From the NCBI GenBank assembly GCA_002189035.1, contig CM007992.1, forward strand, positions 434,001 through 498,000: a DNA stretch of 64,000 nt, read 5' to 3'. Position 1 is the first letter of the stretch; each line of letters opens with the position of its first letter. Positions 22,071 to 62,275 of the stretch are shown here, one piece after another. Below the pieces are notes generated by a model. That model searched no databases, was not told the DNA's origin, and saw only the letters and a program-made list of their open reading frames with translations. Position numbers and translations under genes: made by a program. The DNA comes from Utricularia gibba (taxonomy: Eukaryota > Plantae > Magnoliophyta).

Positions 22071-22152
22071 ATGGCTTCACTGTAGCCATTGCTGCTCCTG
22101 CGAGGGCCGGCTGTTGGTAGCTAAAACTGATTGGATGAAACGCCTTGGGTGA
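22071..22152 (+). promoter_or_regulatory. Two minimal uORFs in the ethylene-receptor leader (MASL* and MKRLG*)
   Basis: ATG GCT TCA CTG TAG at 22071-22085 and ATG AAA CGC CTT GGG TGA at 22135-22152. The second ends 1 nt before the main ATG at 22154. Confidence 0.55.
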
Positions 22153-22153
22153 A

Positions 22154-24517
22154 ATGGTGAAGGCATTGGCATCTTGGGTATTGTTTTCGTTGCAATTATT
22201 TGCAATCTTGGCTTCTGAAAATGGTGACCTTCACTGTAACTGCGAGGTGGAGGGATTCTGGAGCATCGAAAACATGATGGAGTTTCAAAAAGTTAGTGAT
22301 TTATTGATTGGTGTTGCCTACTTCTCCATTCCCATTGAGCTGCTATGCTTTCTTAGCTCTTCCAACGTTCCATTCAAATGGGTGCTTGTCGAGTTCATTG
22401 CATTCATTGTGCTCTGTGGAATGACTCATTTCCTCAACTTCTGGACATATGGACCTCACTCTTTTCAGCTTGTGCTTGCTCTCACTGTCTTCAAGTTTCT
22501 CACAGCCATGGTTTCCATTGCAACTGCCATAACACTTGTAACTGTTATCCCATTGTTGCTTAAAGTTAAAGTGAGAGAGTTTATGCTGAGGAAGAAGGCT
22601 TGGGATCTTGATCGTAAGATCAGCATCAGAAAGAAGGAGAAAGAAGCTGCTTTACATGTCAGGATGTTAACACATGAGATCAGGAAGTCTCTTGATAGGC
22701 ATACTATACTACACACCACCTTGGTTGAACTCTCTAAGATGCTGGAACTGAAGAACTGTGCTGTTTGGATGGCTAATCCAGCGAAAACTGAGATGTGCCT
22801 GACTCATGAGTTGAATAGAAGTACGTTTTCAAACTTCCGAGGAACAACTATCCCAATCGATGATCCGTATGTTCGAGAGATCGAGGCGAATGATGGAGCC
22901 AGAGTTCTTGATCCGGATTCTTCCCTTGCTGTTGCAAGCAATGGAATTGGTGAAATGGGGTCTGTGGCTGCAATAAGAATGCCACTCTTGAAGGTGTCCA
23001 ACTTCAAAGGTGGGACACCTGAGATGGTTCCAGCTTGCTATGCACTTCTGGTTTTGGTGCTCTCAGATGGAGAAAGACGAAGGTGGAGCAACAAGGAGCT
23101 TGAGATCTTAAAGTCTGTTGCTGATCAAGTTGCTGTGGCTCTTTCCCATGCTTCGATTCTGGAAGAATCTCGAAGCATGAGGGAGAAGCTTGTGCTTCAG
23201 AATCAAGCGCTGCAGCAAGCAAAGAGGGATGCACTAATGGCTACTCAAGCAAGGAATGCGTTTCAGATGGTAATGAGTAGTGGTTTAAGAAAACCAATGC
23301 ACTCAACTCGTGGTCTCTTGTCCTTGCTTCAGGATGAGAAGTTGAGCACTGAGCAACGCTTAGTCGTTGACTCAATGTTTAAAGCCAATGGTGTTCTCTC
23401 AGCTTTATTAACAGATTTGATGGATAGCTCTGAGAAGGATGGCGGATTATCCCCATTGGAGATGAGGCACTTTCAGCTGCATTCCACTATCAAAGAAGTG
23501 GCTTGCATATCCAAATGCATCTCTGCTTACAGGGGCTGTAGTTTCAAACTTGAAGTAGACAAATCATTGGAAGACAATGTCATAGGCGATGAAAAAAGAA
23601 TGTTCCAAGTCATTTTGCATATGGTGAGCACCTTGCTGAATGGGAGCAGAAGAGGTGGATTTCTTGTTCTCCGCATGCATCGAGCTTCTAGGACTCCTGA
23701 AACAAAAGGGAGTCGATGGAGATCGAGTTCATCCGACGGCTTTACATTCATCGAAGTCAATGTCAGCATCTCTCGCTCTGGCTTGCAACCGGAAGATGAT
23801 GCATCTCTAGTTATCCCTTTCAGCAGGCAGCATTCCTTCACACCGGTTGAACAGCACATGAGCTTCAATGCATGCAAGAAGCTTGTTCAGGTTCGCCTTT
23901 TTGCCATTTGATATCATTTAAGAATTCAGAGTCCATTTCACTGAACTTCTACTTTCTCAAATGAGCAGCTGATGCACGGAGACATGTGGGTTGCCTCCAG
24001 TTCAGAGGGGTTCGATGAAAGCATGGGGCTTGTGCTGCGGCTACAACTGCAGCCTACCATTGTTTCAGTCGCCCCAGATTATTATGATTCCTCAGACCAC
24101 ATTCCTTCAGATTCCATTTTGAGGGGTTTGCGAGTTCTTCTGGCTGATGCAGATGATATCAACAGGGCCGTCACAAGGAAACTGCTGGAGAGAATAGGCT
24201 GCATTGTTACTCCGGTTTCAACTGGATACCAGTGCATCAGTAATATTGGTCCAGCCATTTCATCATGCTGCCATGTTGTGCTCCTTGATCTCCAGTTGCC
24301 TGAGATTGATGCCTACGAAGTCACCATGAGAATCCATAAATTCCGGAGCCGGGGCTGGCCAGTGATTGTTGCTTTGAGCGCCAGTGACGATGTGGAAATG
24401 AGGGACAAATGCTCGCAGATGGGAATCAATGGTGTTATTCAGAAGCCAGGTACTTTCCAGGAGTTCGCTGATGAGCTTAAAAGGGTTTTGCTGCACAACA
24501 GTCCATTGGCCTCCTGA
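22154..24517 (+). CDS. ETR2: Ethylene receptor, subfamily II (ETR2-like), 2 exons
   Basis: Exons 22154-23890 and 23969-24517. It has a signal-like extra TM helix, IVLCGMTH copper-binding Cys/His, a GAF domain, a degenerate His-kinase and a receiver domain (LLDLQLP, KP). Confidence 0.94.
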
Positions 24518-32990: not shown

Positions 32991-33345
32991 ATGGAGAAGG
33001 GCAAGGGCGAAACCAAATACCGGGGTGTCCGTCCCCGCTCCTGGGGGAAGTACGCGGCGGAGATACGCGACACGGATCGCGGGGGAGCTCGAGTCTGGCT
33101 GGGGACGTACGACACCGCCGAGGATGCGGCGCGAGCTTACGACAGAGCTGCATTAGCGATGAGGGGGCAGTACGCGGTGCTGAACTTTCCCCATGAGCAT
33201 GGCTTGCCGGGGGGGTTCGACTTCCGGCGGTGGGCGGCGTTCCATTTGCCAGCAGGAGGTGATCGAGTTCGAATGCGTGGATGACAGCATCCTGGAGCAG
33301 CTGCTGGACGATGAAGTGAAGAGGAGAGCGAAGAAGAAAGGGTGA
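32991..33345 (+). CDS. Small group IXc ERF (ERF096/098-like) with an EDLL-type activation motif; apparent frameshift at G7, 33209-33215
   Basis: AP2 domain [18 protein letters not shown]...[19 protein letters not shown]...LNFP. The C-terminal [18 protein letters not shown] lies in the +1 frame. Confidence 0.85.
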
Positions 33346-34029: not shown

Positions 34030-34520
34030 AGACAACCGGTCTCGGTTGGGGTGGCCCGGCGGCGGGCCTGACAACAATAACGCCGCGGGCCAGGGGGTTT
34101 TCTTGGCTTATGCGGCGGCGCCGGCGGGCGTCTCCATCGATGCATATTCTTTTCAATACGATAGAGGATATGGGAACTAGAAAAGTTATGCGAGTTTATT
34201 GGGTCGCCGAAGCCTGTTGCTTCTGCTGACGCTTAACCACCCACCCGGCATTGGCATGCTCCATCAGAATCCCGGGAATTCAAATGCCGACGAGCACGTA
34301 GACTCTCTCCTTCTGGGCCTCCTCATCCAACTCCTCTGTGCGCAGTATCATCATCTCACGCCCTGAGAGAAATGAAATGGGGATCTGCTCTGACTCTCTC
34401 TGCAAAGATGATAACTGCTGGGATCAAATTTGGAGAGCGTGAAACGGCATTATTGGGCAGAGGAGACCGATTCTAGACGATGATGGACGCCTACAGCTCG
34501 CACCTTGATTAACTGGGGCC
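34030..34520 (-). pseudogene. GC-rich decayed coding-like fragment of unknown family between the two ERFs
   Basis: About 150 codons in one minus frame (..SGREMMILRTEELDEEAQKERVYVLVGI*IPGILMEHANAGWVVKRQ..DGDARRRRRISQENP..) interrupted by 3 stops, flanked by very AT-rich DNA. Confidence 0.35.
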
Positions 34521-34629
34521 CCTTTTGTTATTTTTTTTTAGGATTAAATATTTTATAAATATCGAATGGAGGTACAAGTAGTTTCTCCATCATCTCCTTC
34601 TTCGTCGTCGGTTACGCTTCCCGGGAAAA

Positions 34630-35105
34630 ATGGATCGGGAGTCTGCTTCATATGGATACCTTCCGTTCAACCAGTGCGACTCGCAGGAAATGCTTCTTTA
34701 CCACGTTCTGGAGGAGGCGGAGCTGGCCAAGCCGCCGGGCCCCCGGTGGGTAAGCCGTGGCGCGGCGTGAGGAGACGGCCCTGGGGGAAATTCGCGGCGG
34801 AGATTCGGGATTCCACCCGGAACGGCGCCAGGGTTTGGTTGGGGACGTTCGACACGATCGAGGAGGCGGCGATGGCGTACGATCAGGCGGCCTTCGCGAT
34901 GCGGGGAACCGCCGCGATCCTGAATTTTCCGGTTGAGATGGTGAGGCAGTCTTTGATCGGGATGGACGACTTCTTCAACGAGGGGTGCTCTCCGGTCATA
35001 GCGCTGAAGAAAAAGCACTGTTTACGGCAGCGGAACAGCGACACCGCCGCCAGCAATGGCGCCTCCGGGAGTAGACGTGGGCACGGGTCGGGACTAGCAG
35101 AGTAA
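34630..35105 (+). CDS. ERF1: ERF1-like (group IXc) transcription factor, C-terminally interrupted by a hAT element, with an apparent frameshift at C5, 34740-34744
   Basis: [24 protein letters not shown] (the ERF1 N-terminal motif) is in one frame. The AP2 domain [33 protein letters not shown] and [12 protein letters not shown] are in the next. The original tail lies at 35678-35737. Confidence 0.8.
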
Positions 35106-35677
35106 CGAGTATCAGAGTAACGAGTATCAGTCATTGAGTCATGACCATATTATGAGTTCACGAGTTGGGTTGATGGGTTTTCACTCACAACTCTTATCAT
35201 ACCCGAATTGATTCATTATCTGTAGACTGGTCAAGTTGACTCGAATATGAACTCGTCAATCTGTATTTTATCTTATTTTTTTATATAATTATTTTATTTT
35301 TCAATTAATTTTTTCATTATGTAATAATGTTTTTATTTATATATAATTTATTTAATTATTGTATATTTGATTTCAAAAAATGTAATAAAATTTATTTCGT
35401 ATTTTATGATATTTGGGACTTGTGATATATAATATAGTTGAAGTTAATTAGTATTAAATTATAAATATTAAATAAAAAATATAAAAATTAAATTAAAAAA
35501 TGAATAATTTAAAATATAAATCATATATTCTTTCAAGAGTTACTCGAATAACTCATCGAATCGAAAATCGCCAACTCAACTCATACTTGTTTTTCACGAG
35601 TACAAGTAACTCGTATTCATTCCATACGAGTTGACTCACAGGTAACTCGGGTTGACCCATACCCATGCCCAGGTATA
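35072..35677. mobile_element. Non-autonomous hAT-type element (606 bp) with an 8-bp TSD
   Basis: Perfect TSD TCCGGGAG at 35064-35071 and 35678-35685. The 16-bp imperfect TIRs are TAGACGTGGGCACGGG and (reverse complement) TATACCTGGGCATGGG. Clustered subterminal CGAGT/ACTCG motifs surround an AT-rich core. Confidence 0.9.
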
Positions 35678-36047
35678 TCCGGGAGGACCCGCGAACAAGA
35701 GGATATAGTAGAGCTGGGAGGCGCAGCTTACAAATGAAATCAATAGTAATTATTCTTAAATGCAATTAAAATCAATAAATTCCTATATACTTGCAAGAAA
35801 TCACATATTTTATTATATAATTTAAATTCATTTTATTTTAATAATAAAATAAAATGATAATCGAAAATCACGGAATTTATTACCAAAGAGTAGCCGTACC
35901 GTACGTCTTTACGGCCCGACCAATGTAGATTCCAGTGCAACTGGAAACACTACGCCGTCTCAGAGTTCATGAAGGAAGTAGAGATGGGTATCCGTGCAAT
36001 GGAACAACAAGGGGGAATCTTGCATCAAGGAAGCAAAAAACCTTGAA

Positions 36048-37886
36048 TCAGGTGAGGCATGAGTAGGCAAGCTCCTTCTCCTCGGAGAGCTCTTGAGCAG
36101 TCAAGTCCAGCTTGTTTCTTGAAAACTCATCGATGGGGAGTCCTGTAGTGTGCGGTCATCATGGAGTTGGTTAATTCGAGAAGGGAGAAGGGGAGGAGTT
36201 TTTATGAATCCTTTCTCACCTTGGACGATGGTCCATTCTCCATTTTTGCAGGTGACGGGGAAGGAATAGATGAGTCCAGGTGGGACGTTGTATGATCCAT
36301 CGGAGTAGACGCCCATGGAAACCCAAGTGCCCTGATCGGAGAACAAAATGGGATCAGAAATAGTGAATTCGTTGCATGATAGATATGGTGTTAGGACAGA
36401 CCTCGGGGGTTCCAAGGACCCAGTCACGGATATGATCGCAGGCGGAGCTAGCAGCGGAGAGGGCACTTGAAAGCTTTCGTGCTTTGATAATTGCTGCGCC
36501 ACGCTGCTGAACAACGGTGATGAACTCATGATTCAGCCATTCGTCATCAGAGACGAGGGCACGAACTGGCTTCTCTCCGGCTGGGGTTGTCACCGTCGCA
36601 TGGTTGACATCTGGGTACTGTGTTGAGGAGTGGTTCCCCCAAATAATCACATTCTTGACGTCAGAGACTTGGACGTTCAACCTCTCTGAAATCTGTCCAA
36701 GAGCCCTGTTGTGGTCCAGCCTAGTCAAACAAGTAATGTTCTTCTGTGGTATTGATGGTGCAAACTCCTTCAAGATCAATGCATTTGTATTCGCTGGGTT
36801 GGCAACAACCAAAACCTGAGACAGAAGGTGGTTTACATGTAAAAAAGATGCACGGTTTGATTGATACTCCCAATCTGGGAATTCCTGCAACTATATGATG
36901 CTCATCATCAACAATTACCTTGCAGTTAGCAGCAGCATGCTTTTCGAGAGCAGAAGCCTGAGACTTGTAGATGGATACGTTCTTGGACATTACATCTTTT
37001 CTTTCCATGCCCTCTTTTCGCGGGAACCCACCAACCAATACAGCCACGCTAACACCAGTGCAGGCTTCGACAACGTCAGTCGTAGCAACAACACCTAGCC
37101 GAAACATAAAGAAAGACAGTGATTGGCAAACATTTCCAACTGGTCCTGGCATGATATGACATATGCAGCATTGGGAATCTAAAATTTGAACCTTTGAGAA
37201 GAGGAAATGCAGCATCCACCAATTCCATTTTGACACCGTTGAGTGCTTCAGCAGCCGGAGGAATATCCAGCATATGCAGGATTACAGGCTGATCAGCTCC
37301 CAGCATAACACCCCTGGCGATCATGGGTACCAGCGCATATCCAATTTGCCCTAAACAATAACGTCAACGATGATATCCAACTCAAGAAGTTGCGATGGTC
37401 AGAGGCACATAAAACCAACTTAAATCACAAAGTCTTCACATCCTGTACTTTCAGAAACCACTGTTTACCAAAGACGTTTTCTTGTAACAAAATTTTCTTT
37501 TTTCATGATAATCCTCTAAGACCCTTTGTCCAAATTCGGACAGAAAGTACCCACCAAAAAATTTAAAAAAACGAATTGCTCGGAAAAACCCAAAATCGAT
37601 ACGGAAACAGCAACCGAAACAACAAAATTGAAATCCCACCACCACATCAAACAACGGCAAAATCTGCAAGACTGCTAGTACTTCCTCCAACACAAATAAA
37701 AAATCCATGAACCGTAAAAGGAACCCAAGAACATGAAGATCCGTCCGCTCGATCCAAATCGAAGATCGACACAGGACGTAAAATCAACAGAGACTGCAAA
37801 CCAAACGGGGTAAAACAGATCTAGATCAAATTTCACTACATACCTGCAGCTCCAGTGACGAGAACGCGAACTGGTTCTTTAGCCAT
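36048..37886 (-). CDS. MDH1: Cytosolic NAD-malate dehydrogenase, multi-exon
   Basis: [67 protein letters not shown] and C-terminal [11 protein letters not shown]. Confidence 0.96.
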
Positions 37887-41406: not shown

Positions 41407-42998
41407 TCAGACTCTCACTTCCTGAGGGGTCGTCTCCGTTTCCGGATTCTCCTGCGACACCTCCTCCAGAGACTTGCCTTTGGACTCCGGCACCAGCAGC
41501 GTGCAGATCATCCCCAGAGCATTGATGCATCCGAGAACAATGAGTGAGTACTTCACCCCGATCCCTGGAGGATACCCTGCATCTGTCTTTGTTGGATCCC
41601 TGGATTGCGCGGCGTACAGGAAACCGAATGCGCCGATTATTGCTCCGGCTTTGCCTGCCGCGGCGGATATGCCGTGGCAAGTGGAGCGCAGCCGGGCGGG
41701 GAAGATTTCCGCGGGGATGACGAATGTGGTGGCGTTGGGGCCGAAGTTGGCGAAGAAGAATGTGAGGGAGTACATGACCACGAACCCGATTCTGTTCTCC
41801 TTGTGAGTCCAGTGAGTGTATGGAATGGCTATGGCGAACATGAAGACGGTCATGAAGAAGAAACCCATTAGCTGGATGAGGAATCTGCCCATTTTGTCGA
41901 TGAGGGCGACGGTGAACCAATAGCCGGGAACTGTGCTGCAGAGCGCGATCAGAGTTTGTGCTCTGGCGATTCTGTAGACTTCGTCGAGAGCGTTCATTGT
42001 TTTTGCAGGTGGGATCCATCCGATTGCGGAGAAGATGTCTTTTTGGAAGAGGTTTTGGCTGTAGAAAGCGATGTCCAGCAAGAACCAGGTGGAGGTGGTG
42101 CCGAGAAGATGAAGGCCGTGGCGGCGGAGGAATTGCCGTGAAAAGAGCCCGAAGTCGTTCCCACTTCGTTCGGCGATTTTCACCACTTTCTCTGGTTCTG
42201 CTTCGATTTCAACTTGCAGCACCTTTGACATGTCCGACGCTGCTTGTTCGGCGTTTTTAGCAACCAACGCCGTGTACCTGGCGGTTTCCGGCATCTTCAT
42301 CCGCCAGTAATATGTCAACGCCGCCGGGAGAGCACCGAACATGAGTACCAATCTCCAGACGTAATCGGCTTGAGGGACTGTGGAGGCGTTGGCGTTATCC
42401 TGGTAAGCGGGAGATGGATACGCCGCCTTGAAAGCGGCGGAGAGTATAATCGCCACCATTCCACCGCCCAAAATCCCGAACCCCTGCATCGCAAATACGG
42501 CGGCGATAAACGATCCCCGAGTCTTCTTATTAGCGTACTCCGACATGATTGTAGCGGAAAGAGGGTAGTCGCCCCCAATTCCAAACCCAAGCCAAAATCG
42601 GAAAAAACAAAGCGTCGCCATAACCGCCGTCGGGTTGCTCCCAAACGAAAGCCCTGACGCAACGGAGCAAACCACCATCAATATCAACGTTATGCCGTAC
42701 ACCCTTTTCCGGCCGAGCTTATCCCCAGCCATCCGAAGAAAAGCTGCCCCGCCAGAGTTCCACATAATGCGACGCCATTCACAGCGGCCGCAACATTCGG
42801 CGGCAAAGTCCCAGGCTTCGCAGCACCGGCTTGGTGGTAGTAGATTCTCCCAAGGAGTTTCGTAACTAAAGAAATACAGAAAAGATCGTACGCGTCGGTA
42901 AAGAAACCCATTCCGGCGATCACGATCGCCGTGAAATGGTACCACTGCGTCTTCGCACCATCGAGGGCGCTCAAAACTTGCAACTGCTCCCCCGCCAT
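41407..42998 (-). CDS. PHT1: High-affinity phosphate transporter, PHT1 family, intronless; apparent frameshift at C4, 42723-42726
   Basis: [34 protein letters not shown] and the PHT1 signature [13 protein letters not shown]. One missing G turns WLGDKLGRK into WLGISS. Confidence 0.95.
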
Positions 42999-44078
42999 TG
43001 ACCCGTCGCTCCACTGTAACTACGAGACGAGGAGAGGGAAAGGCATCGCCTCCTTATTCATAACCAGAGGATTCAAATCCTGGCCGTCGGATCAGATACC
43101 AAGTTTGACCGTTGAAGATCAAATTCCAGTCTCATTACAGCTGGCCCATTGCCCTTTCTGTCTTATTCTCAATTAATTAATTATTTTAAAAATAATATAT
43201 TCTCAATGGAAAAATGTCAACTTTGACTTTCCATATTAGAAGCTATCACAAGCTTCTCCCCACTAACGCCAACAATCAATCAAATTATGTTCCTTTTTGC
43301 TTCTCTTAGGTAAATGGTGACATTCTTTTTCATTGGTTTTAAATATAATTTTATTATTTCCAAATAAAGTAATACATATCTTCATTTCCATTATCATTAT
43401 CTTTAAAATTTGATAGTATAAATATGAATTAATTTTTTTAAAATATTTTGGTGATGATATTACCTATTTTTTAAGATGTAAAAAGAATCATAAACCGTTT
43501 ACGTGAGCCGATCACGATTTAAACGGTTCAATCACGATTAAATCATAATTATTTTTTAAACAATTTTAAAACAGTTTCAATTTGATTAGAATGTCATTAT
43601 AGACTATTTACGATTTAAAATGATTCAAATACAGGTTTTAAAACACATGATAATACCTAACCCAAAGAGCTTGTACGGATACATGATTAAAGTAAATGGG
43701 CAATTAGGGATTGAATTATTAGTCGTTAATCACAATTATTTGACCGAGAGCCGTACACTTAATTCACAAGGGCATGAGTACGTGGCGAATGGAAAACGTG
43801 AAAGATTATCCACATAATATTTTAGTATTGTTTCCGTAGTGGGATGTGATTATTAAATAAATATTTGATAATAAGTTTTATTTTAAAATAATTTTAAATA
43901 ATATTCTAAATAATTCCATACAACTAACATTAAATCTGCAAACAATGGTTTATTTTAAATTATATAATTTAAATTTAAAATATTTGTTCCAAGCATGTGT
44001 TAAAAAAATAATTAGAATGTTATTAAATGATCACGATATCATATGTTTTGACTTTGGAATTTCGACGTACAAAGAAGA

Positions 44079-44145: not shown

Positions 44146-45485
44146 TTCTCCAAAGTCAACGATATGACGAAATATGGTTTAAAATACGATTTCATTATGA
44201 GATTAGAAAAAAAAAATATTTAATACAATAAGTTAGATATCTTGAAAATTTTATTATTTAATATATAAAATATAAACTTACATTTTTATGTCGAAAAAAA
44301 ATTCTTTTCATTTTTATGTATATAATAAAATTTCTCTCTCTAGATTTGGAATGAATTTTCAGCACATATTATTTTTATTAAAAATGAAATATCATATTTT
44401 AATATAGATATTTTTGATAATTAATCTTTTTTATCAAATAATAACTTCTATCAACAACAAATAGACAAGTTTTATCAAATCCCTAATTTCTAGGCAAACT
44501 CCTCTCTTGACAATTTTATGAAGTTTTAATCTTTATTTATTTATTTTATCAAAAATATCATTTAATATAATTTTTTATCTGTATCTTGATAATAGCAGTC
44601 CATGATATTTGAATTTGAATGAATTATTCTCATTGTGGTATTTGAATTGTATGTTTCTCCAAAGTTAACAACATAAAGATGTTTTAAAATCAATTGGGGA
44701 CGCATAATTGGCTCTGTTCTGAGCTTGGCTCTAGAGTTGGTCTCAATTTTGGAGCAATTCATTCAAATTGTGGAATAAAATAAAGTAAATAAAAATAGGA
44801 CTTCCATTGATGTGGGTTGCTGTGATCATGGGCCCATAATGAAATTGGGCCCCCAGGAATGAGAAGATTGGATGTACTTTTGGTGTTTAGTTAAAAAAAT
44901 ATATTGGCCCAATAAGTTAAAGCATTATTACCAATAAAAATGTTTGCTCAGACTCTTAAAATTATGAAAGTAAAATATCCGAAGATTGGGATTTTAAAAG
45001 ATAATGATTTTTCTGAGGGTTTGAACTTAGTTAAAATTTTTATATTATTATTTAATTATTAGTATATTTAAATTAGTTATTTTAATGTGATTTTGTGTTT
45101 AGAATTTATGAGAAAAAATTGAAATTCAGAATTTAATTATTTAAAAAATTTTGGAAAACATATTTCAGTGAAAAAGTACGTAATCTACCATGTTATTTTT
45201 TTTTTTCAACCAGCTGGAGGCGTTACCTGGCGGATCCGATTACACGGTAGAATGAAATAACGACGAAAACGGGATTGTGTGATGTGAAATGGCGAAGGAT
45301 TTTGGCCCATGTTCCTGAATTTCTTCTTCCTTAAGCTATGATTATCAAATTGTAATCTTTCTCTGGGGGACCATCTCATAGAGTTGAATTTCTCTAAGGC
45401 CCACGATTGGGGTGGGTACCCTGTCTGTTGGTCTTCCCAGAATTAGCGATTATCAGAAGATTTCCAGGGTGGTTTTTTTGGGGGG

Positions 45486-57134: not shown

Positions 57135-60100
57135 CTACCTTCGAAACCTTCTCCGGTAGAGAGCTTCGTCGATGTATCCTGCACTGACAACCCGGCCGTC
57201 GAACGTCCGGCCATGCAAACCGTGCGCAGCCACACAAGCTGCCTCACTTCTTCTGTATTCGATGAACACAGTCCCTGTCTCAAAGATGCTACTCAAGTCT
57301 GTTTCACTGTCATCGTCTGCGTTTCTTGTGAATTTACTGGAGGCAGATTCATAACCAGCAGACACTGCATTTTCCATGTTGCTCTTGTTGTCTGCATTCA
57401 TCTCTTCATCATGCAAATGCTTGATTCCCGTCTCTAGCTCAGGACCAAGAGTGTTGGGTTGAGTGGCCATTTCTTTTTCATGGCACGAGAGATGTTCAGC
57501 GGGTATAGTTCCATTTTCAGAGAGCACTTGAACTGTGGCATCTGGGATGAGCATATCACATCTCTCGTTGGAAGAATATCCAATGTCAAGGTGTCTGTCA
57601 ATGTCAATGGGCTCAGATGCATCAGAATTCGGTACGCTACCATGACTAACAGAATGGATTTCTTCCACCCGTTGAACGAAATTCTTCGATTCAGAGGTAT
57701 TGGATTCCCCAGACTCGCTGACACTTGCAGCCACCTGTTGAGTTCTACTGGCCCAAATATCATACTCAGTACTGCAACCATTAACAGAAGCCTTGCCGTG
57801 CTTCGCATCAATTGCTTCTGTTGTGCTAGAAGCATGCATTGGTTTGACTATGTTCACAGATTTCACAACACCAAACCTGTTAAAAAAAATTAAAATGAAA
57901 AAAAAAAGCCAAGGCACGAATAAATTTAAAAAAAATGCCAGAAATTTCTTATGTTAACCTAGAACACTCCAGCTTTATATCTGTTAACAAGCCTTCAAGT
58001 TCTGACTCAGCCAAGGACAAGAGATGCTCCGGATCCAACTGAAATACAAGCAATTTAGTAACCACGTAGAGAACGATGGGAAAATTCAAAAGCAATACAT
58101 CATGTGTGCAGACTCTACCACATTTTTTAGCTTTAAAATGGGAGTTGGCTTCTCCAGAAGTGGCTTCGCGTGTTCAGGGATACCATAAAAGGGTGGTTTC
58201 CCAACATTTCCCTACAATTATCACACTGTGTTACCGTTTTGTATAAATGATTTTTAGAGAAAAATAAGCATATGAGACAGGCAACGAACCAAAACAGCTT
58301 CAGGCGTGGCAAATACTGCAATTACAACTTTTCCACCTAGTCTTAAACCACTAAGACCAGCACATGCCTTGGAAGATACTGAATGGTCAACATACTGAAG
58401 CATCAACGGATTAGTTTATAGCATGAAGGGGCATGAGATATTTATGGTGCAGAGATATCAAACAAGAAATAAATGAGATGGTTCACATCTATCGTTCAAA
58501 CTATGCATACATACTAGTAAAATAGCGTACACGTATTACCTCCAGAAACGCGCATGCTTCATTAATTTCATCATTCACTTCAAAGTGGAATGCCTTCACA
58601 TTTCCAAAGGCTTTGGCAACGTCCAGAAGCTGATGAGTGAACACAAAAATTTATTAATAACAGCATACTTTTTGGAGGACAGAAAACTTGTGCATAAACA
58701 CTCTGCATCAACTAACCATTTTAGATGAGATATGGCGTGAAATGCCTCCAATGAAGATCTGCAAACTTGAAAAAACCCTCATTGGACAGAATAGAGTAAT
58801 CGCATTATACACACGAGTAAAGATCTAGATAATTCTGCTTGATCAGCATCATATGGTCAATGGCAAATAATGAGATTGCCTACTTTCATCAATCATGTTC
58901 AACAAAAAAACCTGATATCCCGGTAACAACTTTTGGTTTGTTCAAGCTTTAAAGACTCAGATGCATACCTTATGGGGTGAATCTTCAACAACATCACTGA
59001 CTGAATCCACATTAATCATTGACTTTTCGTGAAAAGCAGTCTGCATGAAAATAGCAACTGTCTGAAAACCTGCTAATGACAATAAATCTCAGAAGTTGAA
59101 TTTTGAAAGAAAAACTGTTTCAATGAATATACTTGATGGAGCCAAGCAAGCCCATGCATTAAATATGCGGAACAGAAAAAACGTCATCAAATGACAAACA
59201 CTCATTTTTCTTAATGAACCTCATGGCTACCCAGGATGCGAAAGCTCAATAAGACTCAGTAACTGTGCAGCCGTCCTAATTGTATTGGAGGAGATACAAT
59301 CACTGTGACAATTAGAACAACACGACAACTCTTTCTTGTGCATGTGTTCTTGTGTTTTTATTCCATAACAACTAAATAAACAAAAATCCACGAAATTGAA
59401 TACTGAATGTTATGCTACTCATGTGGACATACATGAACGAAAAAAATAATCCTCAGAAGTTGAATAAACATACAAAAATATATTTTTTAAAATTACATAT
59501 TCAGGACTTGCAGAACAGCAACAGTTTATGAACATTGACACCATGAAAAAGATACGTTGAAAAACATTTCTTACTGTTATGGCAGCATAGTCTTTAGGCC
59601 GTCTGAGGATAATATTGGAGCCCAAAAACGATAGAGCCTTTAAAGTTAGGGCTGCAGAAGCATCTTCTTGAGTCAAAAATTCCAGCAGAGCTTGGCCCTT
59701 GTCCTTGTGTATCTGAAGTTGAACATAGAAAGAAACTTGTGAATCTTTCTTGAGACACATACTAGCAGAATCATGGAAGCAGAGAAAGGGTAGGACATAC
59801 TATACAGCTAATGCAGGGTTGGGTTCCTTGAATGTGATTAATACCAGAGGAAAGTAAAAATTGATTAACACAATCTATTAAATCCTTCTCGGATGCTGAA
59901 GCAGGTAAGTTGTCAACATATAGTCTCCGCATAGGACGCGTTGCTTCAGTAAGTTGAACAGATTCAATGGCCTGCATATGCAAGGAAAAGGCATGATGAA
60001 TTGCCTTTAGAGGAACAGATGCGACAGAAGTTACACCCGGAAACTCAAGGCTGTTTAAAGATGAGCTTTGGGTCACTTTCTCCATGTTGGATAGAGTCAC

Positions 60101-61324
60101 ATCACTAGAATTTCCCTGCTGCTCAGCCGTTGGTAGATCCCATCTTGCAGTTCTTTTTTCCTGGGAATGATGAATAGGAGAAGGAGTTTTTCCTCCAGCA
60201 TCTGTTTTCCTCTTTCTGGGTGAATAACCGCCAAGACCACTAGACGCACCAAAGTTCTGCCATTGGTTACTACCAGACCCAGTAGTGGTCACTCGCTTCT
60301 TTTCAGCCGAAGAATGCTCTCTTCGCGATCTTCCTTTGCTAGAAAGTGACAAATCCTGAAGCTCTGTTTTATCCACGGTCGTGTGCTGAGATATATTTTG
60401 TGAATGCAATACTGAATTTCTATTTCTCTCGTCCGCATGCTCTCTGATTAATGACCTCCGACTTGGCCTTGATTCTTCACCACTGCCATGAGGCAACTCT
60501 ACATGCTTCTTTTCTGTATCATATTTTTTACCAGAAATTCTGCGTCTAATACTGCCTACCCCATTATCGTGTTTGTGCCTCCTTTCCTTTACAGTAATAT
60601 CTCTAACTTGGTCTGCTAATTTCTCAGCACTCATCACATCTCTAATACTTCGATTTCTATAATTCTCAGGATAAAAAACCCTATGCTCAATAATTTTCCT
60701 CTTTCTTGAGAGCTTTTTGTCCCCATTATGGTGCTCTCGACTATACACCCTAGATTTCTCTTCAATTTTTTCAGAAAATCTCGTGTTACTCATTGCTGAA
60801 CTGGAATTCTTTCTATGATATTCATGAACATGATCATCATTGAAAAGAACACCCTTATCGGGAATGCTGGTATCAAGCCTCCCGATTTTTATATCATGCT
60901 CTGTATTGGAGCCGAAATTCCTTTCAACAATGCTCCTAAGTTTGACGTCTGGACCCCGTGATCCTACATGCTTATCCAAAACACGGTCTTCATTCTTTCG
61001 AAGAGTATTAGAATCCAGAATATTCCAAGAAGTTTCATCCTTCATGCTGCGAGTAATATGTTTTAGATCCACCAACACAGAGGACTGAGTAACAGGACTA
61101 TTGTTCTCTAGTGAACGAAAAACCATCTCCCCAGCAAATGGAGTATCAGTTGCTTCAGCATTGCTGTCCATTTTCTTGCTTATAGATCCTTTTATTTTCC
61201 TAGCACGCATTATTTCATCGTAAGAGAATGGCCTCGTTCGAGCTGATGTACCCTCCAAACACTCCTCTTCATATGGTTCAGACCTAGTCTCGCATCTCCT
61301 CTTTTCTTCATCAAGTCTATCCAT
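57135..61324 (-). CDS. U2AF65-like (splicing factor U2af large subunit-like) RRM protein with a long N-terminal extension
   Basis: EGTSARTRPFSYDEIM, QLTEATRPMRRLYVDNLP, ALLEFLTQEDAS, LRRPKDY, GLRLGGKVVIAV, DIKLECSRFG and VFIEY..LHGRTFDGRVV. Confidence 0.88.
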
Positions 61325-62275
61325 GTGTCCCTTTTATTCTATATTCCTCAGACTTCAAAACTTGGTCGTGCTGCAGCAAATTCACGATAAAAAAGCAAAA
61401 CCTGCAAAATGAAAAAGCTCCAAAATCAGTTCAAAGCACCTAGGAGACAATGATTACGACAACAAAGCGCTAAGTTTTCATTCCAACCAACGTGTACCCC
61501 ACTACCTTACACCAAAACCGAACACGAAATCAGTTCTGGGGAAAAAAGACCCATAGCAAAAAACCCTTGAAGAATAGAAATGAAAAAAAAAACCCTAGCT
61601 AGTTGCTTGGAGGGCCGGAGCTCCAAGTACATTTGTTAAACAAGAAAAGAAATTTAAAAAAAAAAACCACAATTTTGAAAAACCTTGCTGCTTCAAGTAC
61701 ATTATCCCCACACCAATTCTTATTCCATCCCAAAACGAGCAGAAAAAACACAAGAATTAAGTAAACCCCCAATATAACCTAATCTCAGAACAAAATCATT
61801 CCATCATCCGACTTAGCCCGGCGATTGCGAGTTCCGATAAGCGAAACCGCACTTCGACATGAGAAGTCATCCAATACTTACGCATGAAGAGAGGCCGTCG
61901 CCGGAGATGCTACCGAAAAGAGAAATTGTCGACGGAGAAAGTAGTCAAGAGGTGTCTTCAGTGGAGTGTGCGTGCTGCGGCCAACGCAGATAAACTAGGC
62001 CCTAGAACCCCCGTCCGAGCGGGACAAATGCTTCCCCGCGAAATGACCCGCCGGTTCACGCCGCCGCCTAAACCCGGTTTTTGAATTTTAATTTTTAATT
62101 TCTTTTATGAATTAAAAAACCCGGTTTTTTTTAAGTGTAATTAAAAAAAAATCCTAAGCAATCTCCTCAGTCAGCCACCAATATTTTCTGTGGCCTCCCT
62201 TTTTTCTCCGTTTCTCATCATCTCAACACACGGCCACCCTTTCTTCGCCCCTCCCACACTCGCCACTCCTCTGCA

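Follow-up and report, generated by a model that had tools for sequence, protein, structure and literature searches.

We consider it probable that a non-autonomous transposable element of the hAT type has inserted into the 3' end of a group-IX ERF gene, truncating the tail of the encoded protein, that the group-IX motif and the AP2 domain have been kept, that a frameshift upstream of the AP2 domain is artefactual, and that the insertion is a further step in the erosion of the gene. The event itself is an ordinary insertion of a transposon into an exon, of the textbook type, and raises no new question. The features of the gene and of the element are collected in Table 1; all positions are those of the window, by which we mean the whole 64-kb stretch of DNA that was analysed.

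Table 1. Features of the predicted ERF gene and of the element inserted in it (positions in the window)
Feature	Position	Strand	Basis
N-terminal coding piece of the ERF gene, with the group-IX N-terminal motif	34630..34744	+	family HMM
C5 run, break of the frame	34740..34744	+	two frames read directly
AP2 frame up to the insertion site (AP2 domain at 34761-34907 and conserved block)	34746..35071	+	Pfam, HMM, structure
Left copy of the target site duplication, TCCGGGAG	35064..35071	.	read directly
Non-autonomous hAT-like element, 606 bp	35072..35677	.	ends, fold, repeats, no coding
Left terminal inverted repeat, TAGACGTGGGCACGGG	35072..35087	+	pattern match
Element-supplied C-terminus, 11 residues and TAA stop (35103-05)	35070..35105	+	frame reading
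Right terminal inverted repeat, TATACCTGGGCATGGG as read on the minus strand	35662..35677	-	13/16 to left repeat
Right copy of the target site duplication, TCCGGGAG	35678..35685	.	read directly
Displaced original 3' coding end (..TREQEDIVELGGAAYK), original stop at 35735-37	35686..35737	+	in frame after virtual excision

The boundaries of the element are marked by two exact copies of TCCGGGAG, which flank it directly; this 8-mer occurs nowhere else in the 64-kb window, whichever strand is read. Immediately inside, the left end agrees with the reverse complement of the right end at 13 of 16 positions, and the inverted ends can be aligned over about 22 nt if one indel is allowed. When the window was searched with the end pattern at up to 3 mismatches, just two matches were returned, the two ends of the element, where 0.18 would be expected. 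The structure was also measured against 200 composition-preserving simulations, in which we counted exact 8-bp direct repeats directly flanking a 16-nt inverted repeat with at least 13 of 16 positions in agreement. Under these conditions, 0.045 such structures are expected per window, and 0.01 if the end is G+C-rich, as it is here. The real window contains three, of which the element in the ERF gene is the sole G+C-rich one. Because the combination of duplication and inverted ends is rare in the simulations, and because so few pattern matches are expected, the element stands well above chance. The sequence-only reading had described a 606-bp element with 16-bp imperfect inverted ends and a perfect 8-bp duplication, and both its coordinates and its sequences were confirmed.

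The composition of the element is uneven. Its ends have a GC content of 43% (35072-35260) and 42% (35530-35677), and the core between them (35261-35529) has one of 10%. The motif ACTCG/CGAGT is present in 10 copies in the two ends (337 bp together), often inside GAGTAAC or AACTCG, against 0.39 copies expected from its density in the window, and is missing from the core. This enrichment of about 25-fold, restricted to the ends, bears out the subterminal repeats that had been claimed for the element; no contiguous stretch of 337 bp at any place in the window holds more than 5 copies. When folded as a single strand, the element pairs end to end (z -6.4 relative to shuffled sequences). Its longest ORF is of 44 aa and has no match in Pfam, and an Rfam scan of positions 34400-36100 returned one sub-threshold chance match only.

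The 606-bp insert is a non-autonomous element of hAT anatomy. It is placed in the superfamily, putatively, by its anatomy, since neither the window nor the collections searched yielded a further copy. Within the window, neither the inverted-end pattern (3 mismatches) nor blastn-short, run with the two ends and with the element as a whole, detected anything other than the element itself and AT-rich noise; the search by BLASTN for family members that the earlier reading had proposed thus yielded no further copy there. In public metagenome and prokaryote-genome collections, which are without plant genomes, the end pattern TAKACSTGGGCAYGGGTNGGG gave 5 and 7 matches, respectively, a chance level. 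These were single, pattern-only matches on bacterial contigs at 58-72% GC (one at 44%), without a second end.

Elements of the Ac/Ds type duplicate 8 bp of target, have short inverted ends and carry, in their terminal 200 bp, short repeats to which the transposase binds; the Ds1-like members, a few hundred bp long, otherwise share little with the autonomous element (PMC3260210). With Ds1-type elements and other non-autonomous members of hAT (Ac/Ds of maize; hAT MITEs), the insert in the ERF gene shares the 8-bp duplication next to short imperfect inverted ends that start with TA, the restriction of short repeats to about the terminal 200 bp (binding to which is putative here), a size of a few hundred bp, the lack of coding capacity and an AT-rich filler. 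In contrast, its ends (TAGACGTGGGCACGGG) and its subterminal motif, which is ACTCG/CGAGT and not AAACGG, are unrelated to those of Ac/Ds.

The terminal consensus of hAT elements is YARNG. The termini found here read TAGAC and TATAC, with Y and A in both, R in one, and the G of position 5 in neither. Likewise, hAT elements have a weak target preference for nTnnnnAn, and TCCGGGAG fits it with the A at position 7 but not with the C at position 2. The agreement of both the ends and the target with only half of what is usual for hAT would be compatible with membership in a different superfamily, such as that of the Mutator-like elements, for which an 8-bp duplication would be atypical, or with filler DNA captured at a repaired break. 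We regard this as very unlikely. Mutator-like elements usually have duplications of 9-11 bp and long inverted ends, and in filler DNA one would not expect inverted ends that abut an exact duplication. Moreover, an 8-bp duplication, short inverted ends starting with TA and subterminal repeats make up the pattern of plant hAT elements (PMC3260210). The 8-bp duplication is the hallmark of hAT elements in plants, but to call it diagnostic, as the sequence-only reading did, was too strong, YARNG being matched only in part.

The gene that received the element is a predicted intronless AP2/ERF gene of group IX, ERF1/ERF-C3-like, on the plus strand (34630-35737). It codes for a single AP2 domain of the ERF type (Pfam AP2, E 3.5e-16), in which the AAEIRD signature can be read directly. 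The domain lies upstream of the insertion and is untouched by it, in agreement with what had been claimed. In a comparison with known structures, the AP2 frame matched that of AtERF1 (2GCC) at 6.8e-29 and, likewise, the DNA-binding domain of ERF096 at about 1e-28. A search with the AP2 frame matched about 7,300 plant ERFs. The best of these were ERF1B and ERF-C3-like proteins at 65-78% identity. Among 106 homologues no clear nearest relative stood out: the matches listed lie at about 68-79% identity, two fragments from Genlisea (76-77%) included.

From the 106 homologues, all with a single domain, we built a family HMM. It aligned with the AP2 frame over model positions 89-192, from the region preceding the domain through the GCSPV.ALK.KH block, with a score of 208 bits. 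It also aligned with the N-terminal frame, over positions 33-62, with 20 bits (E 7e-5 in a search of all six-frame pieces of the window). The N-terminal conserved motif, of the LPFNENDSEEMLL type, is present in this piece, in a frame that is one base off the AP2 frame. The gene thus has in common with the group-IX ERFs of the Arabidopsis ERF1, ERF-C3 and ORA59 type a single ERF-type AP2 domain with AAEIRD, the absence of an intron, the N-terminal LPFN..DS.EMLL motif and the post-domain block GCSPV.ALK.KH. It differs from them in length, with about 158-164 residues as compared to 190-260 in the homologues, and at the C-terminus, where the VVVFEDLGA.YLEELL sequence (EDLL) is cut to EDIVELGGAAY in the pre-insertion form and is absent from the post-insertion form. 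Two further features set the gene apart from its family. The segment from the AP2 domain to the ALKKKH block scored 169 bits, where held-out members of the family scored 180.5 +/- 5.2, and the first residue of the AP2 domain is a W, at a position where the family has a near-invariant Y. Both would fit a fast-evolving lineage or relaxed constraint alike.

The N-terminal and AP2 frames are joined if one base is added to the C5 run at 34740-44 or to the adjoining G3 run. Similar breaks are found nearby. The frame of the neighbouring ERF gene is broken in a G7 run (33209-33215) that is one G short, and that of a phosphate transporter gene in a G4 run (42723-42726, minus strand) that is one base short. 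All three intronless genes of the window (3/3) carry exactly one lesion each, a single missing base in a run of G or C, and are otherwise intact. These recurrent losses point to systematic indels in the assembly. Because the two neighbouring intronless genes carry a lesion of the same type, we read the C5 frameshift, with good confidence, as a probable assembly error. The sequence-only reading had named a real frameshift, and with it a dead gene, as a possible refutation; the presence of the same lesion in two other genes of the window makes an artefact the probable explanation. The main argument for a dead gene is thereby removed, which is not to say that the gene is shown to be alive. It follows that the frameshift should not be taken as pseudogenisation, and that gene calls in this assembly must allow for one-base losses in G/C runs.

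The consequences of the insertion for the reading frame can be followed directly. The frame, whose codon phase was verified both by hand and by script, enters the element after ..NGASG, continues for 11 element codons, and stops at a TAA inside the first of the subterminal GAGTAAC repeats. In this way, 11 element-encoded codons and a stop take the place of the final 17 codons of the host, so that the claim that the element supplies a new C-terminus was upheld. When the element and one copy of the duplication were excised virtually, the frame ran on through ..SGRTREQEDIVELGGAAYK to the stop at 35735-37, as had also been claimed. The excision product ends in ..NGASG-RTREQEDIVELGGAAYK-stop, and RTREQEDIVELGGAAYK is lost from the present protein. 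The predicted length of the protein falls, by arithmetic, from about 164 residues to about 158. GC content is 56% in the orphaned coding segment of 49 nt taken together with the duplication (35678-35734), as compared to 62% for the coding sequence and 15% for the 143 bp that follow the old stop. That the fall in GC coincides with the old stop supports a coding past for the displaced segment. Frame, position and composition together support the view that the displaced tail was formerly coding.

A different outcome would result if the element, or part of it, were removed from the transcript as an intron, in which case the protein would retain its native C-terminus and gain a few residues. Several GT..AG pairs would keep the native tail in frame (among them 35071/35671, 35087/35684 and 35102/35684), the frame of the tail stays open from 35552 on, and a core with 10% GC between GC-rich exons has the composition of a plant intron. 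In addition, Ds elements are reportedly spliced out of maize transcripts (Wessler et al. 1987). The Ds insertions in the maize wx and adh1 alleles likewise involve a hAT-type element in an exon, with GT and AG at its ends or close to them, through which the frame could be restored. In the ERF gene, however, all of the candidate donors are weak (4/4, with 3-5 of the 9 positions of CAG|GTAAGT), and splicing is hypothetical; group-IX ERF genes are, moreover, normally intronless. We therefore hold removal of the element by splicing to be improbable. Equally doubtful is the related idea that the element is an incipient intron, spliced partially and in frame by way of the weak GT/AG pairs and the AT-rich core. 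Were this so, the gene would produce two ERF isoforms, one with the element-encoded end and one with the native tail and a few extra residues, and the gain of an intron from a hAT MITE would have been caught in the act.

For the search of the products of virtual excision and of splicing, the pieces were run separately. In the 106 homologues, the ALK.KH block is followed by 20-40 basic or serine-rich residues and then by ..NVVV[FL]EDLGA[DE]YLE[EQ]LL.., which is the EDLL motif. The best alignment of the displaced tail (..EDIVELGGAAYK, then the stop) to this motif is EDIVE-LGGAAY, and the tail ends with a K and the stop where the homologues run on with LEELL. The displaced tail aligned with neither the family HMM nor an HMM of the motif only. 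A Smith-Waterman comparison with the tails of the 106 homologues, evaluated with two nulls, found no significant similarity (p 0.08-0.18); the scores were equalled or beaten by 8-16% of other six-frame C-terminal peptides and by 8-18% of shuffled sequences. The resemblance of the lost tail to VFEDLGxxY, to which the sequence-only reading had drawn attention, was accordingly weakened, with p values of this size, no HMM alignment and the LEELL half missing. We also considered a hidden indel in a G/C run that would mask a full EDLL motif in the tail, and rejected it, as the alternative frames show no such sequence; no EDLL-like peptide was found in the other forward frames downstream.

Position and frame nonetheless suggest that the displaced tail descends from the EDLL region. 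Because it is without the LEELL half, the acidic tail would have been eroded before the element arrived, and what the insertion took of the activation motif would have been a remnant at most. The earlier proposal that the insertion cost the protein its acidic tail is, as regards an intact tail, not borne out. In the present protein, an EDLL-type acidic/leucine activation motif is absent. In ERF96, the EDLL C-terminus is needed for activation, and a construct that lacks it fails to activate a reporter (PMC4659910). As in that construct, the DNA-binding part is kept here (a prediction in our case) and the C-terminal EDLL region is absent (PMC4659910). The two differ in that the deletion in ERF96, a small ERF of group IXc, was engineered, whereas the loss proposed here would be natural and stepwise.

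An early loss of the motif is also what one would see if the ERF copy had already been a pseudogene when the element arrived, with a real frameshift, and had tolerated a neutral insertion. In favour of this, LEELL is missing from the pre-insertion tail, which ends early, the score of the conserved block is about 2 SD under that of family members, the AP2 domain begins with W in place of a near-invariant Y, the gene as assembled is frameshifted, and it has no close orthologue (about 65-79% identity among the matches listed). Against this, the sole other frame-breaking lesion has the artefact-like form that is found in two neighbouring genes, both clearly conserved, and there are no internal stops over about 470 nt of the two frames. 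Moreover, the AP2 residues common to the AtERF1 and ERF096 structures are retained, and so is the N-terminal motif. We consider a gene that was dead at the time of insertion to be unlikely, although clearly less so than removal of the element by splicing.

In the account that we favour, insertion of a hAT-type element into a gene that is truncated but otherwise kept, the element would have entered the last 17 codons of a group-IX ERF and duplicated 8 bp of target, and the predicted reading frame would now end at the TAA in its first subterminal repeat. Poly(A)-like AATAAA/ATTAAA motifs are found within the element at 35384 and 35453-35492. Transcripts probably end at these motifs, in the AT-rich core, or at the old signals at 35765-35848. 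The product would still be expected to bind GCC-box DNA, and, devoid of the EDLL-type remnant, may be a weak activator at best or a passive competitor. Since the tail had already lost its LEELL half before the insertion, we hold it more likely that the latter is a further erosion step in a fast-evolving gene than that it gave rise to a new regulator. Should the gene be expressed, it would represent a natural allele of a factor of the defence/ethylene pathway, in which DNA binding is predicted to be kept and the activation tail was lost in two steps. It would also be a small case of the remodelling of regulators by a transposon and a deletion in a very compact plant genome.

Several other features of the window were recorded. 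The second ERF gene (32991-33344, plus strand) lies 1.3 kb upstream and codes for a small, ERF096-like protein that has an AP2 domain and whose EDLL-type tail is intact. An ethylene receptor gene (22145-24517, plus strand), with ETR1_N, GAF, HisKA and receiver domains, is located about 10 kb upstream of both ERF genes, so that three ethylene-pathway genes lie within 13 kb. The ERF gene with the element is arranged tail to tail with a gene for a cytosolic malate dehydrogenase. The phosphate transporter gene (41407-43110, minus strand) is of the PHT1 type and has 535 intact codons, with the first 100 or so in another frame; the frame changes at 42723-42726, between FFGWLG and DKLGRKR. Gene density in the window is about one gene per 4 kb, and a PPR protein encoded in it is closest (70%) to proteins from Lamiales.

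The scan for repeats with inverted ends also returned an AT-rich, MITE-like structure at 44398-44568, with an exact 8-bp repeat, TTTAATAT, around 155 bp and inverted ends that agree at 14 of 16 positions. A third structure, at 57881-62149, has an exact 8-bp repeat, TAAAAAAA, with inverted inner flanks (13/16) that are 4.3 kb apart and of low-complexity A/T sequence, and is probably due to chance. Lastly, a short, very G+C-rich island (GGCCCGGCGGCGGGCC..GCGGCGGCGCCGGCGGGCG) is found at 34040-34140, in the AT-rich spacer between the two ERF genes, and may be a coding relic.
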